From Haplodiscus bocki (Eukaryota): a stretch of 64,000 bases of DNA. This document shows, one piece after another, positions 1-10,300 of the stretch. The stretch lies in the NCBI GenBank assembly GCA_965655095.1, contig OZ296648.1, positions 66,216,001 through 66,280,000 on the forward strand, read 5' to 3'. The position numbers and the translations under genes are program-made. Numbering within the stretch: the stretch's first letter is position 1; every line of letters begins with the position of its first letter. The notes below the pieces were generated by a model. It worked only from the letters and a program-made list of their open reading frames with translations. It was not told the DNA's origin and did not search any database.

Positions 1-1
1 T

Positions 2-3000
2 GGAGCGAGCGTGTCATGTCTTAGTGAAAAACTTTTCAATCAAATCAATGAAAATCATCAAGTCAAAATACAGCCAAGTACAACAAGACTCAGCAGCGCA
101 AATCAGATGCCCATTCAAATTAAAGGCACAGTATCCGTACCAATCAAAATAGGTCCCAAAACGTACGAGCATACATTTTACGTCTTAATAGAAGCAGCAT
201 CAGATTGTTTACTGGGACTTGATTTTCTTGAAACAAATAAATGTGATGCACTATTTTCGGAAGGCAAATTGAAAATTGATAGAAATATATTGGTCCCTCT
301 TTACAGAAAACAGTTTTCGTTCGACGAAAAGCAAGTTTATAGAGTCGTGGCATTAGAGAAAGTCTCAATTCCACCACAACATGTTATGATTGTGCCCGGC
401 ACAATTCCTGGTTGGAAAGCGCCACCAGTAGCGAGAGTCGCTTTGTTTGAACCGCACGAGCGCTTCATAGATAATGAAACTCAAATAGCACAGGATGCTT
501 TGTTTAGTTTTGAAAAAGGAATAGTTCCTATCACAGTAGCAAACACAAATGATGAAGTCTTAACAATTTACAAAGATACAACATTGGGATCGTCCCAACT
601 GGTATCAGATCGTCTGATACAAGAAATAAATCAGAAGCAAATGAAAAATTACAATGAAGTGGATCCCAAGTACGACTTGGAGAATGTAAAGAAAGCAATT
701 AGCAAAGAAATAAACAATAACTGCAGGGCAGATTTTAGAAACTTAATAGATGACTATAGTGATATTTTTTCAATCAATCAATGGGACCTCGGAAAATGCG
801 ACGCAACTAGTCATAGAATAGATGTGAAGCCAGGCTCACAACCAATAAAATTACCGAATAGAAGAATGCCAGTGCATTACAAAGATGATTTAAAAGAGAA
901 AATAGATGCCTTCATGAACAAAGAGTTGATTACACCATGTCATAGTCCATATAGTGCACCAGCGATGCTAGTTCCAAAAAAGAATGGAAAACTACGATTA
1001 GTAATAGACTATAGAAAACTGAATGAACAAACAATCAAGTCTTGCTGGCCGATACCGTCAATAGAGGAAATTTTCGATACACTTCAAGGAAGTGCTTATT
1101 TCACAACAATAGATATGTCTTGGGGATTTTATCAGCTACCAATGGAACCCAAAAGCCAAAATTATACAGCGTTTAGTACTCCTTTCGGATCATTTAAATG
1201 GCTACGCATGCCAATGGGATTAACGGGAAGTCCGAACACATTTCAAAGTTTAATGGAACACGTCCTTGTTGGACTCACATGGAACATTACAGTACCTTAC
1301 TTAGATGATTGTATCATCTTTTCAAAAACTCCAGAGGAGCACATTAAAAGACTGCAACAAGTTTTCCAAAGATTTCGTGAGGCGAATCTAAAAATCAATC
1401 CGACAAAATGCGCCTTTTTCCAAACAAAAGTTCAGTTCTTAGGACATGTAATCAGCAAAAATGGATTGGAGGCCGATCCGGAAAAAGTTAAAGCAGTCCA
1501 AAATTTTCCAGTACCACAAAACCAAACAGATGTCAAGTCGTTTTTAGGACTTTGTTCATATTATAGACGGTATATCAAAAACTTTGCTATGATAGCACGA
1601 CCATTGCATAAAGCTAGTAAAATTAAGAGTTCTTTTACTTGGACAGAAGAAACGCAAGAAGCGTTTGAAAATTTAAAGAAACACTTGTCTTCTACACCAA
1701 TCTTAGCCTTTCCGGACGTAAAAGAACCATTCATTTTGTACACTGACGCAAGTCTAACAGCAATGGGAGCAGTATTAGCCCAAGTGCAAGACGGTAAAGA
1801 GCGAGCTATTTGCTACGCATCTAAGGCATTTTCAAAATCTCAAACAAACTATTCTGCGACAAAACGAGAACTTTTAGCAATTGTAACTTTTACTCGACAC
1901 TTTAAACATTATCTGCTCGGGAGGAAATTCAAAATTGTGACTGATCATCGTGCATTGCAGTGGTTGCATAACTTTAAAGATCCAGATGGATTAACAGCAC
2001 GATGGCTCGAAAAGTTAGCGGCATTTGATTATGAAGTGCAACACAGACCAGGCAAAAGTATTGGTCACGCCGACGGACTTTCACGAATCCCCATTGTAAA
2101 TCAAGTTACTAGTTCTCAAAGCAAAGAAAACATAGATAAACCAATAAAAGCAAAATTTTTTGAACTCATTCACAAAACCGGCAATCTTTTTGACTCAAAA
2201 GACTCACTAGCACATTGCATATCATCAGATTTTAAAATGTCCGCGGGAATTGCCCGAAGTTTCAAACGCAAGTTCCCGTACAATTTTCCTGAGAGTACGA
2301 ACTCTCCCCTTTTTGTCCAACAAGTAGACGAACGTTTCATCTACCACCTAGTTACAAAAAAACGCTATTTTCAAAAACCAACGTACGATAGTTTGCGACA
2401 ATCACTAGAAGCAATGACGAAGCACGCAAATAAACATAAAGTCACTGAAATTAGTATGCCAAAAGCCGGTTGTGGACTTGATCGATTAGAATGGTACAAA
2501 GTTGAACGTCTTATCAGAGAAATTTGTGCACAGTCGAACCTCACTATCACAGTCTATGATCAAAATAAAGATGAACAATCACAAAAACAGACAGAAACAC
2601 CAGTTCACTCTGCGTTAGGCCAAGCACAACGACAAGATGAGGCATTGTCTAAACTGATTGAATGGATCCAAAAAGGAAAAGCACCTACATCACAAGAATT
2701 ACAAGGACTTCCTAGGCTTGCATGGCAACTCAGCAATCAACTGAAAAGTTTACAACTCATCGATGGAATTTTGTGCAGGAAATTCGAAACCGCAGATAAC
2801 CAAGTGGTATTGCAACAAATAGTACCACCGTCAATGACACAAGAAATTCTATCAGCATGTCATTCATCACCAACAGCCGGACACTTAGGAGTTGCTAAAA
2901 CCTCAGAGAAAATAAAACAAAGATTCTACTGGCCAGGACTGCAGGAAGACACAAAATTGTTTGTCAGTCGGTGCCCGGAATGTCAAAAACGTTCGGGACC

Positions 3001-4531
3001 ACCCAAGAAATATCATCACGCTTAAGTAGAATGGCAAGCCAGTTATCCATTTCACCACATTGGAATTGACTTTATGGGACCTTTGCCAATGTCAAATGGA
3101 AATAAACACATCTTAGTAATTGGCGATCACTTCACAAAATGGTACGAAGCAATACCATTACCAGATCAAACAGCTGTAACGACTGCAAACGCTTTAGTTG
3201 ATCATTGGATCAGTCGCTTTGGTTGTCCGCACAGCCTTCATAGTGATCAAGGTCGAAACTTCGAATCAAAACTTTTTGAACAATTAATGCAACTTCTTGA
3301 AATGGACAAAACTCGAACAACTCCTTTTCATCCTCAGTCAAACGCAGTAATCGAAAGAATGAATAAAACTTTACAAAACATGTTAGCAAAATGTATTAAT
3401 GAAGAACAAAGCAACTGGTCACAACAACTGCCTTACGTAATGATGGCATATCGATCTTCGGTACATGAATCAACAGGATATACACCGCAGTTCCTAGTTT
3501 TTGGACAAGAGTTGAGTTTACCTTTAGATTGCATGTATCCTAACCCACAAGAAAATGCAACTACTGATATTCATGAGTTTGTGTACAATAAACAACAAGC
3601 ATTCCAACGAGCATTCGAGCTAGTCCGACGCAATTTAAACGAAAAACAAAAACGCCGAAATGCTATCTACAACAAAAAGGTTCACGGTCCGACATACAAA
3701 GAAGGACAAAAAGTTTTACTGTATCATCCAGTCATTGCTGTAGGAACAACTTCTAAGTTCGCAAGTCCTTGGAAAGGACCATACATCATCGAAAAATGTT
3801 TGAACGATGTCACATTCAGAATTAAAGAAGAAAACTCTGCAAAACAACAAATTGTACATTACGATAGATTGAAACCATTTTTCGAACCTGCGCCAACGTC
3901 CAATGTACCTACAAGAAATAAACCAAGAAGTTTTCAGTCAACTCAAAACAGAACAGACGCACGCAAACATATAGATGGAACACTTAACCACGATGATTGT
4001 CTTAGTTTTCTGCCTGCATCTTCTAGTATTTTCACACCAACACCTACCGTAGGACGAACAACTGCATCAACTACACCAAGTAGAATTACGCCACTTATTT
4101 CGCCCGTACCGACAAGACGTGAAGTAACGGGATCACCTCCTGTGTTCTCGCCATCACCAACACGAGAACCACCTAGTCCACACACCAGAAAGGACGTTGC
4201 GATACAACCACCGGTTACTCCTCAAACTGACATACAACCTCTTATACCTGAGAATGTCTTTCTCCACGAAAGTCAATTATCAGTTGACAACGTCACGGAA
4301 ATTGTGGACGCCGCAGCTAGAAGTCTTAGGAGAACACCTCCTGCAAACACGTCTAACATGCAACTACGACCTAACACGTCCTCACAAAGAAAAGCAGAAC
4401 CGCTTTTTACGGCATATCTTCCTGATATAGTTACAAGTTATAACTCGCCAGAGCGAAAACCACAAAAACAGTCAGGAACGAAATTTAGTAAGACTCCAGC
4501 AGGAAAACGCAAAACTCATCATCAAAAATAA
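2..4531 (+). CDS. pol: Gypsy Pol polyprotein (protease, RT, RNase H, TARG1-like macrodomain, integrase), 5'-truncated by the window edge, with one in-frame stop at 3023-3025
   Basis: Frame from nt 2 reads GASVSCL (end of the D-[ST]-G-A protease motif) and later LLGLDFL. RT motifs LVIDYRKLN, MPMGL and YLDD (1298-1309). RNase H motifs LYTDAS, KRELLAIV, VTDH, ADGLSR. IN zinc finger H-x6-H...CPEC, D-D-E core (IGIDFMGP / SDQG / IERMN) and GPY/F motif SPWKGPY. ORFs 11..3025 and 3074..4531 are in the same frame. Confidence 0.95.
2156..2560 (+). other. TARG1/OARD1 (Poa1p-like/DarG-related) macrodomain embedded in Pol
   Basis: GNLF...[25 protein letters not shown]...FIYHLVTKKR...KPTYDSLRQSLEAM...ISMPKAGCGLDRLEW...ITVY aligns by eye along its whole length with human OARD1 as recalled (GDLF...[25 protein letters not shown]...YIYYLITKKR...KPTYENLQKSLEAM...LSMPRIGCGLDRLQW...ITVY). 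Confidence 0.93.
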
Positions 4532-4694
4532 CGACGATCTCCTTTCAGGATCACAACGCTGCTATACATCTCAATCCTGCAACAGAAGCAGCACTCGACA
4601 AGTTTGTACCGGCGAAAACTTCATTCTTAATCGCAGGCGGATCAATCGTACTTTCTTTATTTTTGTTCATACTTAACTTTCCACTCTTTCACAG

Positions 4695-5031
4695 ACAGGC
4701 ACGTGCACTTTGCTGTGCCCCACGTCGTTTCTTCAAGAATAAATCTGGCCAATTTATTCATGTCACGAACGACATTGAACCAGACTCAGACTCTTCATTT
4801 TTAATTTTGACTCGTGAGGAATTCACTGCACTACGTGCTCTTGCTAAAGAAGCCTTACTGAAGACTGAAGCTAACGCACCGTTTGTTTACTCCGCCGAAG
4901 ATGAAAAAAAACTGTACCCGGACGTCACCGCACCAACCAGAACCATTCGTACAACACCTCCCTTGGTTCTGACCACCTTCACTCCAGCTCCGGTACCTCA
5001 CGTCGACACCACACAAACTACATCAGCCTAA
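4695..5031 (+). CDS. Putative spliced accessory ORF/exon downstream of pol, function unknown
   Basis: The 122-codon frame 4663-5031 has no ATG. It is preceded by a pyrimidine-rich tract, branch-like ACTTAAC and CAG acceptors (4692-4694, 4696-4698). Thr/Pro-rich C-terminus. Confidence 0.4.
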
Positions 5032-6042
5032 GTTTCACTCCAAGTAATGTATCATAGTGTCTATTGTACAAAGTTCACCACGTAACATAGGTAAGTATCC
5101 AAAAAGTAAACGCCTCTTCGGAGCCTCTGTGTGGCACTAGCGTGCCCCCCTCTAATCCGTCATTCCGTCCATTTCAGCCTGCATCAATGTTTCATTTGCC
5201 TCCAAGGCGATCACCTGGTCTCTCCCCGAGCCACACGCTGTCCATTTTGTTGCCAACCCTTGGCTTTTGTCCAAAACTTCCTTCAGCCCCATGTGCTCAA
5301 CTTGCTCCTTTGCCCCTGCCGTTGCTCATTGCCATAACCCCCAATTTATAACTGGCCCCACTTCTACATCTCTTTGCAAACCCTGCTCCCAAACGTCATA
5401 TTACTTCACACACATTTGCCCTTCATGTGCTCCACGGAAACCAATTTCCTTTCATGAATTACCCAGATTTACTTTGTTGCGACCCCCGCATTCTCTTGTT
5501 TGCCCAACCTCCGCCTCAATTTTCTAAATTTTTTACTTTTCAACGTAGATACCCCAACCATGAGAAAAACAATTGAGACGATGATACGTAATAAACTTCA
5601 AATTATAGTGACCGGCTCTTATAGCCCTTCAAAAATGTCTTGCTAACCTAATAGTTCTTATTAGTGCTTGGATCTTTTTAACTCAGTTCATCAGCGAACT
5701 CCATTTGTAAGCTCAGCAGCTTCCTATTTGTGAGACGGTTTCCGCGTCTCCCCTTGAATATTTTAGCCTACCTTCTGCATCAATGACAACTTGTGATGGG
5801 TGAACTCACAACGTTCTAGCGGGTCATGTGCTTCACCTCTTCGATGACAGCCAATACCGCATACTCAGGGTCACACTTTTCTCTGGCCCGGCGATCCTAA
5901 AAAGGACAAACCATTCTACAAGTCGCAGTTTTTTTTACGGACCCCTTCACAACTTTTCATGAGCGCTCCTCACATGGTCAATCAGTCAATCTTCTTGAAC
6001 CCGTCAGCGATGTCTCAGTTTAGTTTGTGGGACACAAACTTC

Positions 6043-6053
6043 AAGAAGGAAAG
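6043..6053 (+). promoter_or_regulatory. Polypurine tract (plus-strand primer) of the Gypsy element
   Basis: AAGAAGGAAAG lies 3 nt upstream of the LTR start TATGAC. Confidence 0.7.
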
Positions 6054-6056
6054 CAT

Positions 6057-7384
6057 TATGACAATCAGAAATTGTCAAAAGAAATAACATGAACGTTTTG
6101 ATAAACATGAACACTTTTAACTCGAACAATTTTGAACTACTTTTTCTATTCTAATTTTGGTGCTCACCTCTATTATTCTTAAATTAGATTGCACTTATCA
6201 TACTTCTGATCACGCCAAAATATCACGCCACCTTAGTCTAATAAAAGTGCAGAATTATTATTAAAATGACGATGATTTCTGGTGCTTTAACAATCTCTTG
6301 GAGATGGCTGCTACATCACAGCAACGTCCTGGAAACGTTTTGACAACCAACATTCCAGAACATTCCAAGGACGAACTCCAGAGACTTTTTACGCCATCGA
6401 TTGCACCAGATCGACAAAAATAGCCAAAAATCGTCAAAAGCACCAACAGGCGTGAAAATTCATCACGCCGATCGGGGTATAAAAGCCAGAGCTCCAAAAT
6501 CAACTTTTCAGTGCTCAACTCGGTAATCTGAAAATCAACCTACGACGTTAGACGTCTTGTGAATGAATCTTCAAAACAAATAGCCAATTTCTATCTTCAA
6601 ATTTTCTGACGAATTCGAATCCCGTCTATTCAAAGAACACCCCAGAAGGATCAATTGGCTGTCTAGAAGATTTTGATCGTCCACATAAGTTTCCAATCAT
6701 AATGTCGTGAGTTCTATTAGTTTAATCTTATAATTTCTTTTGTAAAATACAATTTTGTTAAACCGTACCTTAACGAAAAGAAATTCAATCAACTTCATAA
6801 TTTTATTTCTTTCACTTTTACCATAGCAAGCTCTAAACAGATCAAAATTTTTGTAACCCCAAAGTAGTTAAAACTACTTTTTCAACTCAATAGTAGTAGA
6901 GTAATCCCAGACTTACTACTAATAAAACCATTTACGTGACGAGAACCTGAAACACGCATTCGAAAGAAAATTAAAGAAAGATGAAATTTGTTCAGAGCTT
7001 GTTAAAATTTGAGAAGATAGAAAGTCAGAACCACCACCACCATTAATCGAGATTATAAAATTTAGAATTAAGAAACAACTCGTTTGCATAGAGTTGATAG
7101 TATTCCAAACCAAATTCACTCTATACCGTGCGGTGGGCTAAGTGACGGTAAGGTACCAGCGTAGCATATTGACCCGAACCAAGTAGAACCTGGAAGCTCT
7201 GCAGTACGGAAGATTTGCATGGTTGTGAACTGAACGTCTTACGGTTCTGCCAAACACCATAGAGTGGATTATTTAAGACGAATAGTTAAGAAAGAATAAA
7301 ATTCAGCCACCACCATTCAATACAATAAAAGCAAGCCACTCGAGCAGAAAAAGAATATGAAAACACCACACCACACACGTCACA
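6057..7384 (+). repeat. 3' LTR (~1.33 kb) of the macrodomain-bearing Gypsy element
   Basis: Starts TATGAC after the PPT and ends GTCACA (near-inverted termini). Internal TATA-like GGGTATAAAAG near 6475-6485 and AATAAA signals near 7295 and 7324. The partner 5' LTR is not in the window. Confidence 0.7.
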
Positions 7385-10300
7385 AGAACGACAGTTCAGC
7401 GACCAGGTTCAACAAGAGATCATTGGAAGCTTTTCATACGATGAACTGCTTGCAGAATTCAAGAATTATTTCAAAATGGACTATCTTGAACAGGGCAAAG
7501 GAACCCTAAAACAACTAAAAAAATGTGAGATAGACTTTAGTGGCCTAGTCAAAGACAGTCTATTTGTGAGCACAATGTCAGTTACGAATAAAGACACCAA
7601 TGGGCTGAAAATACGGAACGAAACAAAGTAAAACCCATAAAGAGAACAACCCACAGAGTACAGTGTGAATATTGCTAATTTTGCAAAATAATGACTAACT
7701 TAGACCAGAGAATGTCCAAAACTTAAACGACAACGAGAAGTTGACAGCAATGAGGATCGCCCCAACTGTCTTTTGCAACAGGAAAAAAACTTCACTTTGA
7801 AAAAACTGCGACGGCTCTAGTGCCAAAAACCAGCCCATATCAAAAGGACTCCGAAAAGAAAGTCGAGCAAAACAAACCAATAAAGACAAAATTAACAAAA
7901 ACAAACCCTTAGCTCCGAAAAACCCAAAACAAATCACCGACGCATCCAGTTTCACACAAAAATAAAAGCACACCAATACATTATCTGAGGTCAACTAACC
8001 TAATCATAACATCGAAATAAAACAATGAAAAACTGTGACATCAACTGACTGGCAGCAAACGATGGAAATTGCCAGTAAACACTTATATTAATTTTTACAC
8101 GCTGGTCAAGACGGTATCTTGATTCGTCGCTTGAACGAGCTTGAACGAGCTACATGAGTTGCTGAGCTTAAGCGATCTTTTCCAACGCTACAATATTGCT
8201 CTTTTCCAATCTACTAACATAGAAACAGATTTCTGTGTTGAAAACCTACAGGAACACAACGTTGAAGAACTACATTTATTCCAAGAACTCACACATGCAC
8301 TCACTGAAACTTGGAACGTCGACTGTAACTACCATTTCCAGATTTCTAAGCCAATCAGTTGGCGAACCGTTGTTACATGAAGCAACCCGGACCGTCAATG
8401 AAAAGAACCACTTCTTTCACTCATGGCAACAGTTTGAAAATGATCAAGCCACCCAAAGGCCCTATCTACCACTGTCAACTAACTTCGTTCGAGAAAACAA
8501 ACGCCCCATGTCTTACTTCCTAATTGACTTTTAAGTTTCGACCTCTGATGACTTAACTGGCACAGAAGCTTCAACAACTTTTATCTCCGAACAGGATCTC
8601 AAAAAGGTCAAACTTATCTGCAATCACTCCATAAAAAGAAAGGCACGTTTTCTACATTCAAGAACATATTAGCAAACGGACAACTAGAGAGTCCCATTGC
8701 AGCAGTGAATAAACAGCTTGAAGTCTCTGACTTGCGATTTCGAGGAAGATTCATGATAATCGAAACGTACAAGAACCATAAAATGGGAATTGCTTTATAC
8801 AACAATAGATCCCAACTCTTTATGCTCAGAAAAATATTCTAACTTTTGCTCACATTACAATGCAGCTGATGTCCCATAACAAGACCACACACTGTAACAA
8901 CACTCTTATTGAAGAAAACAATCTAAATAACTTACTTTGGACAAACTTTGGCAAAAACGGCAAAAAACGACTCATTTCAGCGACCACAATGCGACAGGCA
9001 TAATGCTCCTTCTGGAACTTACAATTAAAAAACAATCTTCAAGACATCAGAGAAGGTCAAGGTCAAAAAAATAGCCATAGCATTAGAGCTCCTCTGTTTC
9101 ACAGACTTACCCTAAACAGTTTGTAATGATGTACACAAAGCAAACTTCACCATAGTTTCGCCAAAAGAAACCAAGCACATGAAACGGATAAAACCGTCAA
9201 AGCTCGAATGCTTGCTTTATCAGAAACACAAAAACGCTGGAAAGTACATACTTTAACAGCTAAAAGTTAAATACAACAGAAACGAGACTGAAAAGTAGTG
9301 GTTCCCAGCACCAGAGAATCGGATAACTTGCAACATCCCACAACGAGCTCAAAATATTATAAGGAGCTCAAAATATTGCCAAAAAAACAAAACACCAATC
9401 CAGAAGCAGACCTGGTGTCAATACAAAAATTCTTGGCCAAAAATCACTGGACAGACTTGAATTTATTGCCATTTGACGACCCTAGTGAGACATACAGATA
9501 AAACATGCAAAATGCATGCATGCATGCATCCAAATAAGTTATAAAACATGGAAAATTCAGACATTTAGCATACATGTATTTTGAATGTTTACGCTGCAGC
9601 AGCGAAAGTTTGTTCAAGATGTCAAGGTAAAATAGAAAACGTAACAGCTCTCGCACCTCTAATCACTCAATCGCTACCGCTTCAGACTAGCTCATATTTG
9701 CTATTTACCTGACGCTCTGACCGTTAATCTATTATTTGCTTACAAGTGACTCGGCGTGGGTAATCATAAACTTAATCTGTGTTATTTAATTTGTAATGAG
9801 CGGCCAAATTGTAAGTTCATCTATCACTTGTAAAATTAATTAAGCTGCATCTAAAAACTTGCAAAACTTTATTTATTTTTCGTCTGCCAAATTTTGAAAG
9901 CAAACTACAAAACCCCGCCTAATTTTACGAAATTCTTTGAAGAAACTTGAAAGACATCACAGCAGCAGACAAAATTTAGGCATGGAAAATTTTATATGAA
10001 TCATCCAAAATCCTTCAAAAAGTGTTCGGTAACATATAAAATCTTATAAAACTTTGCTGTTTTTCAACCAGGGGAAGCTATCACTGAAGATAACCTCGTT
10101 AAATACAACGAACACTTCACTGGACCTCATTTTGATAGAAGAACAAACGATGACTTCCCAAGCAGACTAACTCTAAAGGACGAACAGTCAGCGAAATGCC
10201 GAAGATAAAAAACACCCACCCCACGACATTGAAAGAAACCTAGCAAAAATTGTTCTATCTGAGCAATTTTCTAACTGCAAAAATTACTACATTTACTTTT

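Follow-up and report, generated by a model that had tools for sequence, protein, structure and literature searches.

Does the Pol polyprotein of an LTR retrotransposon in the genome of Haplodiscus bocki carry a domain of the kind that strips ADP-ribose from proteins and DNA, and if so, is this an accident of one copy or a retained part of the element? We examined this in a 64,000-nucleotide stretch of the genome (hereafter the window; contig OZ296648.1, 66,216,001 to 66,280,000), where a reading made from the sequence alone had placed a TARG1/OARD1-type macrodomain between RNase H and integrase and proposed that it serves in counter-defence. That observation held. We show that a young, very abundant Ty3/Gypsy family has built a TARG1/OARD1-class macrodomain into Pol and keeps it under strong selection, which suggests that ADP-ribosylation matters for, and may restrict, retrotransposition. 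The proposed interpretation is partly supported, as hydrolase activity, its substrate and any counter-defence role are inferred.

Structure of the element

The features identified, all on the forward strand and in window coordinates, are as follows.

1..3025 (+), first part of the Pol frame: end of protease, RT, RNase H, macrodomain and integrase zinc finger
971..1453 (+), reverse transcriptase (RVT_1; Pfam PF00078, E 4e-35, ORF aa 321-481)
1640..2026 (+), RNase H (Pfam PF17917/PF17919, E about 1e-35, ORF aa 544-672)
2093..2599 (+), inserted module: polar linker, macrodomain, polar linker
2156..2560 (+), TARG1/OARD1-type macrodomain, 135 aa
2222..2224 (+), Ser equivalent to TARG1 Ser35
2357..2359 (+), Lys equivalent to catalytic Lys84 of TARG1
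2480..2482 (+), Asp equivalent to catalytic Asp125 of TARG1
2822..2995 (+), integrase H2C2 zinc-binding domain (Pfam PF17921, E 5e-21, ORF aa 938-995)
3023..3025 (+), in-frame TAA that interrupts Pol in this copy, just before the integrase catalytic core
3074..4531 (+), rest of Pol in the same frame: integrase core, SH3-like C-terminal domain (Pfam rve and Integrase_p58_C) and Pro/Ser/Thr-rich tail
6043..6053 (+), polypurine-tract-like run just upstream of the 3' LTR
6057..7384 (+), 3' LTR
7385..7388 (+), target-site duplication AGAA

The macrodomain is in frame with a 1004-aa ORF at 11-3025, and the frame opens about 210 nt upstream of the window, giving an open frame of 1078 aa at this place. 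Integrase continues in the same frame from 3026, after the TAA, and uninterrupted copies read through here with a 1580-aa frame. In an uninterrupted copy, Pfam domains follow the order expected of Ty3/Gypsy (Metaviridae) elements, with protease at 8-104, RT at 347-507, RNase H at 570-698 and integrase at 964-1315, and a separate Gag carries Retrotrans_gag and two zf-CCHC domains. The two 1328-bp LTRs are 100% identical, with the 5' LTR lying upstream of the window at G000:C1:66212807-66214134 (genome and contig of the window), and the same AGAA precedes the 5' LTR. A TGG-starting PBS-like site lies 4 nt after the 5' LTR. The identical LTRs and target-site duplication point to recent activity. 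No second macrodomain was found between Pol and the 3' LTR of this element.

BLASTP alignment of the Pol of an uninterrupted copy with P0364, the Pol of a macro-less sister lineage, shows that the insertion is clean: a 169-aa module stands where P0364 has 12 aa between LSRIP and the integrase N-terminus.

Identity of the domain

The motifs AHCIS, MSAGIA, LVTKK, KPTY and GCGLDRLEW described in the sequence-only reading are all present. A phmmer search against PDB sequences returned human OARD1/TARG1 (4j5q, 4j5r, 2l8r, 2eee, 2lgr) at E 4.6e-33 to 6e-33 over the whole domain (query 20-146 to chain 12-144), at about 46-50% identity, and Pfam Macro scored 28.7 bits against a cut-off of 22. Identity to annotated vertebrate OARD1 is 48-52%. 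The Lys falls on the first K of human TKKR (Lys84) and the Asp on the D of GCGLDRL (Asp125), with human residue numbers counted from the sequence. Additionally, an AF2 model of the domain (pLDDT 93.8) gave TARG1 structures as the top eight Foldseek hits (TM 0.83-0.87, with 0.87 to 4J5S), followed by DarG macrodomains at TM 0.82, while alphavirus and coronavirus macrodomains reached only 11-15% identity and ranked lower. In an alignment of 15 transposon and cellular sequences, the equivalents of H, S35, D37, K84, G123 and D125 were invariant in all transposon lineages and cellular OARD1s (S26, K71 and D112 in alignment columns), even at 31% overall identity.

Spread and selection

The genome holds at least 150 scored copies of this family, all significant matches, out of about 6,000 first-look candidates, and many have uninterrupted frames of 1560-1580 aa. 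Several sister families, with frames of 1590-1628 aa, also carry the domain. Every Pol with at least 66% RT-RNase H identity has the macrodomain and none at 55% or below does, and the macro-bearing clade in this genome is monophyletic by RT (SH-aLRT 100). Between families the macrodomain is only 43-59% identical, which is similar to protease and the N- and C-terminal parts of integrase and well below RT/RNase H, so that constraint at this scale is moderate rather than extreme. At C1:172.45 Mb we found only a decayed and uninformative relic of a macrodomain, with 30% identity over 80 aa at E 9e-6, about 1.8 kb downstream of an integrase zinc-finger relic and with no ORF of 120 aa or more.

In 604 divergent pairs of copies, dN/dS was 0.061 for the macrodomain, compared with 0.016 for RT, 0.026 for RNase H, 0.023 for the integrase core and 0.16-0.28 for the flanking linkers. 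In 16 disjoint pairs, macrodomain dN/dS was 0.02-0.11, each with p < 1e-11, and 53 of 56 sampled copies keep the full motif string. Thus, the sequence-based outcomes that had been named beforehand as grounds for rejection (no macrodomain hit, a domain confined to this copy, or neutral evolution with lost catalytic residues) did not occur.

Origin of the domain

The sequence-only reading inferred capture of a host-like eraser, but capture from this host is not shown. The host's own OARD1-like gene (a 321-aa ORF) is only about 43% identical, no closer than vertebrate OARD1, and is not the nearest relative. A macrodomain tree (167 rows, 148 columns) was largely unresolved and did not identify a source, and an Atlas search with the RNase H-macro-integrase segment gave nothing usable.

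In other organisms, Gypsy Pols carry the same domain class after integrase (P0126/P0127) or between protease and RT (P0128, whose cluster includes an aphid protein). A single clade of all macro-bearing elements is disfavoured (AU p 0.029). These observations imply repeated independent capture.

Interpretation

We consider it somewhat more likely than not that the domain is a working ADP-ribosylhydrolase that travels with RT/RNase H and integrase in the particle and pre-integration complex. There it would remove ADP-ribose that host ADP-ribosyltransferases attach to replication intermediates or proteins of the element, with thymidine-linked or end-linked ADP-ribose on cDNA, and Asp/Glu-linked ADP-ribose on Gag/Pol or nearby chromatin, as candidate targets. 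Removing these marks would keep reverse transcription and integration going. The literature makes this biochemically plausible, as TARG1 reverses thymidine-linked DNA ADP-ribosylation (PMC8501950) and PARP1-made DNA-ADPr at telomeres (PMC11102865), and NADAR, the eraser of guanine-ADPr (PMC11543638), has likewise been found in Gypsy Pol and Tx1 LINE ORF1 (PMC12477816). Our analysis establishes the domain's identity, predicted fold, intact catalytic residues and exact insertion point, its spread across a large multi-family clade, strong purifying selection, and repeated independent acquisition in other Gypsy lineages. ADP-ribose binding and hydrolysis, the substrate, expression and Pol processing, and a benefit through escape from a host ADP-ribosylation restriction are inferences. 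The public sequencing runs containing the sequence were four DNA or unknown-type runs from one study, none of them RNA. The host encodes many PARP catalytic domains, including intron-less ZNFX1-helicase-PARP fusions, although none has been linked to the element as a writer. A profile search for DarT (PF14487) found no match in this genome, but the family matched in none of the control genomes either, and NADAR is absent from the genome.

An alternative, which we regard as unlikely but possible, is that the macrodomain mainly reads mono- or poly-ADP-ribose and tethers integrase to ADP-ribosylated chromatin, for example at DNA breaks or particular chromatin states, with catalysis secondary or absent. 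This would be analogous to the chromodomain at the integrase C-terminus of chromoviruses. Its position directly next to integrase here, and at the integrase C-terminus in P0126/P0127, is consistent with such a role, and macrodomains including TARG1 bind PAR and are recruited to damage sites. The conserved Lys, Asp and Ser also line the ADP-ribose pocket, and their conservation therefore fits a pure binder as well as an enzyme. However, the aphid-type element has the domain far from integrase, and pure readers such as macroH2A typically lose the residues that are invariant here in every lineage.

A role as an O-acyl-ADP-ribose deacylase, the first activity described for OARD1, or on ADP-ribose-1''-phosphate, appears improbable. 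In this view the domain would deplete a sirtuin by-product that supports heterochromatin, or process a by-product of tRNA or primer metabolism. The Ser35 and Asp125 equivalents are conserved, these residues have reportedly been implicated in OAADPr deacylation by C6orf130, and the PDB entries name the protein O-acetyl-ADP-ribose deacetylase 1. Yet a diffusible small-molecule activity would not need to be built into Pol and co-packaged, there is no evidence linking OAADPr to transposon silencing in animals, and the parallel capture of NADAR by other retrotransposons (PMC12477816, PMC11543638) points to macromolecular substrates. A neutral passenger from a single transduction event, favoured only by the lack of a demonstrated function, is effectively refuted by the low dN/dS, by retention in every family of a clade diverged to about 50% macrodomain identity, and by independent acquisition at three different Pol positions; an artefact is rejected on the same selection and distribution data.

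More speculatively, and doubtful on present evidence, nucleic-acid ADP-ribosylation may be a eukaryotic restriction mechanism against retroelements, a counterpart of bacterial DarT-type defence, written by host PARPs such as the ZNFX1-helicase-PARP fusions expanded in this genome. Retrotransposons would have repeatedly answered by capturing the two known classes of DNA-ADP-ribose erasers, the TARG1/DarG-type macrodomain here and NADAR in Ectocarpus Gypsy and oyster Tx1 elements, and the domain would clean cDNA or its ends inside the pre-integration complex.

Accessory enzymatic domains fixed in LTR-retrotransposon Pol are rare, and each has revealed a host-element interface, as with dUTPase, the chromodomain, the extra RNase H, an m6A demethylase and NADAR. 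Here a TARG1-class eraser, so named by sequence and predicted fold, has been captured independently at three Pol positions in different animals and is carried by what are probably thousands of copies in this genome. This comparative evidence, which we regard as strong, suggests that ADP-ribosylation acts on some step of retrotransposition. The family also provides a natural, highly selected test system, with a ready series of diverged alleles for asking which ADP-ribosylated substrate matters (protein, DNA base or DNA end) and which host transferase writes it, and links the bacterial DarT/DarG and viral Mac1 conflicts to transposon biology in animals.

Relation to known systems

Full-text literature searches for macro or OARD1 domains in Gypsy, LTR and other retroelements found no description of this architecture. 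However, two background statements of the sequence-only reading were too narrow. It held that Gypsy Pol carries at most a dUTPase or chromodomain in addition to its canonical domains, yet NADAR occurs in Ectocarpus (PMC12477816) and an m6A demethylase domain in orchids (PMC9289625). It also assigned RNA-virus macrodomains to the MacroD class, yet an insect virus polyprotein, P0226 (Diabrotica undecimpunctata virus 1), carries an OARD1-type macrodomain at its N-terminus.

Human TARG1/OARD1 (C6orf130; PDB 4J5S/4J5R/2L8R) is a stand-alone cellular protein, whereas the domain here is embedded in Pol with an activity predicted by homology. The bacterial DarG antitoxin macrodomain (PDB 5M31, 5M3I) belongs to the same subclass by fold (TM 0.82, 23% identity) and reverses DNA thymidine ADP-ribosylation in a conflict system (PMC5179494), but the context here is eukaryotic and transposon-borne and the sequence is much closer to animal OARD1. 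Macro-domain ORFs of cellular origin in teleost epsilon-like endogenous retroviruses (Basta et al. 2009, as summarised in PMC4977317), which are among the nearest precedents and likewise place a macro domain in a retro-element of the retrovirus/Metaviridae supergroup, are reported as additional open reading frames in vertebrate retroviruses, not as an in-Pol domain of Gypsy elements. The NADAR domains of Ectocarpus Gypsy Pol and of ORF1 in oyster Tx1 LINEs (PMC12477816) likewise represent an ADP-ribose-processing hydrolase domain fixed in a retrotransposon protein and conserved across a lineage, but differ in fold, known substrate (guanine-ADPr), position (the N-terminus of Pol) and host kingdom. 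The Mac1/X-domains of coronaviruses, alphaviruses and hepatitis E virus, polyprotein-embedded domains that remove host-made ADP-ribose, provide the conceptual model for counter-defence, but belong to the MacroD-like subclass and occur in RNA viruses, not retroelements. Chromoviruses likewise have an accessory chromatin or modification-recognition domain fused to Gypsy integrase, but carry a chromodomain of different fold and ligand at the integrase C-terminus, the position that the macrodomain occupies in P0126/P0127, whereas in the window family it lies upstream of integrase.

A domain of the TARG1 class within Pol

Translation of the segment proposed by the sequence-only reading gives the predicted 135 residues, in frame within the open reading frame (ORF) at 11-3025, and we find that the observation of a macrodomain between RNase H and integrase holds in every particular. 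Pfam identifies RVT_1 (ORF aa 321-481), RNase H (544-672), Macro (773-834 as the best stretch, and 28.7 bits when the domain is scored alone) and integrase H2C2 (938-995). A phmmer search against all PDB chain sequences returned human OARD1/TARG1 (4j5q, 4j5r, 2l8r, 2eee and 2lgr) at E about 5e-33 across the full domain, with DarG and other bacterial macrodomains next at E about 1e-6. An AlphaFold2 model of the segment has a mean pLDDT of 93.8, and its eight best Foldseek matches in the PDB are all TARG1 structures (TM 0.83-0.87, 44-47% identity), followed by DarG macrodomains at TM 0.82. The features of the domain and its module, with the three residues placed by the phmmer alignment, are as follows.

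2156-2560 (+), the 135-aa macrodomain
2222-2224, Ser matching Ser35 of human TARG1
2357-2359, Lys coinciding with the first K of human 'TKKR', Lys84
2480-2482, Asp coinciding with the D of 'GCGLDRL', Asp125
2093-2599, the whole extra module: polar linker, 135-aa macrodomain, polar linker

The window starts inside the element, a retrovirus-like element of an animal genome. The DNA upstream contains a 1328-bp LTR (G000:C1:66212807-66214134, on contig C1 of this genome, G000) that is 100% identical to window 6057-7384. The same four bases, AGAA, flank the two LTRs as a target-site duplication, a TGG-initiated PBS-like site follows the 5' LTR, and a purine run precedes the 3' LTR. A 430-aa Gag with Retrotrans_gag and two CCHC knuckles lies upstream of the window, and Pol opens in the -1 frame, overlapping the end of gag. 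An uninterrupted copy (locus L032) gives the order protease (PR), RT, RNase H, macrodomain, integrase (IN; H2C2, core, SH3-like) and Pro/Ser/Thr-rich tail in one frame of about 1580 aa. The remaining 1.5 kb or so between the end of Pol and the 3' LTR (window 4532-6056) contains only short ORFs (4663-5031, 122 aa; 5267-5527, 86 aa), without macrodomain similarity or an evident function. A sister-family element (L034:10840-14679, the type of public protein P0124) has three further called ORFs of 784, 123 and 344 aa between pol and the 3' end; none has a Pfam hit, and they could be env-like or other cargo.

The window copy carries a single in-frame TAA at 3023-3025, just before the integrase catalytic core, after which Pol continues in the same frame. 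Thus, the copy is very young, because its LTRs are identical, but it is not coding-intact. At least one other locus (C12:70801548) shows the same open-frame length of 1078 aa, and the interrupted form may therefore have been copied in trans by intact relatives.

Comparison with the nearest macro-less lineage (P0364, about 55% identical in RT-RNase H) defines the insertion point. Homology runs to the RNase H end ('...ADGLSRIP') and resumes at the integrase N-terminus, 12 aa later in the macro-less protein and 169 aa later here. This is a clean domain insertion, not a rearrangement or a mis-assembly.

Distribution within the genome

A six-frame search of the 1.50-Gb assembly with the 157-aa segment gave at least 150 scored matches, all at E < 1e-89, from 6,184 first-look candidates. 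Most have no stop in the macrodomain, and dozens lie within open frames of 1560-1580 aa. Searching with the macrodomain of P0124 showed that this protein comes from the same genome (100% match), and revealed further families with 1590-, 1619- and 1628-aa frames, whose macrodomains are 60-70% identical to each other and about 50% identical to the window family. More families (1598, 1602-1604 and about 1650 aa) were found in an additional search, and another lies on contig C182. A decayed element (L069:7166-7405 (-) and 9197-9439 (-), at G000:C1:172.446 Mb) has only a weak macro-like relic (30% over 80 aa) about 1.8 kb downstream of an integrase zinc-finger relic, and no ORF of 120 aa or more.

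In a search with the RT-RNase H region, every Pol with at least 66% identity contains the macrodomain, and none at 55% or below does. On an RT-RNase H tree the macro-bearing Pols of this genome form one clade (SH-aLRT 100, stem length 0.47), sister to a macro-less group; three seemingly macro-less rows inside the clade are truncated protein predictions that end before or within the macrodomain. The domain was therefore acquired once at the base of a clade, which has since diversified into many families and amplified to what are probably thousands of copies.

Selection on the domain

We compared pairwise 39 natural copies of the window family with uninterrupted frames over 3.5 kb, without building a consensus or ancestral sequence.

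Table. dN/dS by segment of Pol in 604 pairs with pS > 0.15
Macrodomain: 0.061
RT: 0.016
RNase H: 0.026
IN core: 0.023
IN N-terminal region: 0.082
Region after the IN core: 0.063
Linker upstream of macrodomain: 0.275
Linker downstream of macrodomain: 0.161

In 16 disjoint pairs the macrodomain value is 0.02-0.11, each with a Fisher p below 1e-11 for a deficit of non-synonymous changes. The pairs share history and the copies were conditioned on open frames, but neither can produce values this low. Additionally, 53 of 56 sampled copies, including interrupted ones and two other families, retain the full H-C-x-S-x-D ... T-K ... G-x-G-x-D motif string. Between families the macrodomain is 43-59% identical, which is comparable to protease (44-57%) and the integrase N- and C-terminal regions, and lower than RT, RNase H and IN core at 70-87%. 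Across all transposable-element lineages and cellular OARD1s aligned, the His, Ser35, Asp37, Lys84, Gly123, Asp125 and Trp positions are invariant.

Other organisms and the origin of the domain

Public protein sets contain further Gypsy Pols with the same macrodomain class in a different architecture. P0126 and P0127, from two contigs of another assembly, carry it C-terminal to integrase, at residues 1281-1428 of 1559 and 1679-1819 of 1949. The P0126 type is not present in the window's genome, where the best match is 45%. P0128 carries the domain between protease and RT (152-283 of 1475), and its 11-member cluster, drawn from JGI, Logan, ENA and NCBI, includes an aphid protein from Uroleucon formosanum. 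P0253, a partial protein labelled as a Brevinema MAG and probably contamination from a eukaryote, has the order RT, RNase H, macrodomain. These lineages fall outside the window clade on the RT-RNase H tree, and forcing all macro-bearing elements into one clade costs 77 log-likelihood units (AU p 0.029, for a group defined post hoc). Three different insertion positions, together with the tree, imply at least three independent acquisitions and probably four.

The closest named cellular relatives are vertebrate OARD1 at 48-52% identity. The best candidate for the host's own OARD1-like gene (L036:1483-2448 (-), in the region of G000:C2:12306358-12306771) is a single-exon 321-aa ORF that is about 43% identical. 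Its C-terminal macrodomain keeps the Lys and Asp and is identical to that of public protein P0158, whereas its N-terminal 175 aa have no Pfam match. The macrodomain tree groups the families of this genome together and places P0126/P0127 next to sea-urchin OARD1-like proteins, but is otherwise unresolved and does not identify a donor. Capture of the domain from this host is not supported.

Relation to known elements

Full-text searches found no paper describing a macro or OARD1 domain in Gypsy or other LTR retrotransposons, although most subscription journals and Repbase lay outside the text searched and prior cataloguing cannot be excluded. The nearest precedents are macrodomain ORFs reported in teleost epsilon-like endogenous retroviruses (Basta et al. 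2009, cited in PMC4977317), NADAR in Gypsy and Tx1 elements (PMC12477816), and other accessory domains in Gypsy Pol (for example, PMC9289625). Accessory domains in Gypsy Pol are already known, and the window element is a Gypsy Pol with an apparently new accessory enzymatic domain, which has unusually strong comparative support and a clear experimental route.

Possible roles in retrotransposition

Our data show a conserved TARG1-class domain, equipped with the catalytic residues, that must benefit the element. ADP-ribose binding and hydrolysis, the substrate and a role against host ADP-ribosylation are inferred from sequence, predicted fold and analogy, and the sequence-only interpretation of a counter-defence eraser is thus supported only in part. 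TARG1 removes ADP-ribose from acidic residues. It also removes it from thymidine in ssDNA (PMC8501950) and from PARP1-made DNA-ADPr at telomeres (PMC11102865), and DarG does the same in a bacterial conflict system (PMC5179494). A retroelement exposes single-stranded and blunt-ended cDNA in the cytoplasm and nucleus, and these are plausible targets of DNA-sensing ADP-ribosyltransferases. In this view, a hydrolase co-packaged with RT/RNase H and integrase would be well placed to clear such marks before integration. The independent capture of NADAR by Gypsy and Tx1 elements (PMC12477816) is a telling parallel, because NADAR is the eraser of guanine-linked DNA-ADPr (PMC11543638, PMC11125620).

We consider a hydrolase that reverses host ADP-ribosylation of replication intermediates or proteins somewhat more likely than not. 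The main rival, which we regard as possible but unlikely, is a reader of ADP-ribose or PAR that targets integration like a chromodomain; adjacency to integrase in two of the three architectures favours it, whereas the invariant catalytic residues and the architecture with the domain between protease and RT disfavour it. A role on OAADPr or another metabolite is possible but poorly motivated, and we consider it improbable. A neutral passenger is excluded in practice.

The host encodes at least 20 PARP catalytic-domain loci, several of which lie in intron-less frames of 1640-2240 aa. The two inspected (L063:201-6224 (+), equivalent to G000:C12:72978700-72984723, and L064:4564-9486 (-) on G000:C5) are fusions of a ZNFX1-domain/SF1-helicase to one or two PARP catalytic domains. 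They are candidate nucleic-acid-sensing ADP-ribosyltransferases and candidate writers, with no evidence yet.

The polyprotein of an insect RNA virus (P0226, 3401 aa; MAG: Diabrotica undecimpunctata virus 1) carries an OARD1/TARG1-type macrodomain at its N-terminus (residues 40-165), 47% identical to the window domain. This macrodomain class is therefore also used by RNA viruses, not only the MacroD class. Additionally, cellular OARD1-type macrodomains are fused to DNA-end-processing enzymes, namely an ATP-dependent DNA ligase in the copepod Tigriopus (P0125/P0251), polynucleotide kinase-phosphatase (PNKP; P0254) and a NADAR-helicase (P0259), which fits a role on DNA-linked ADP-ribose.
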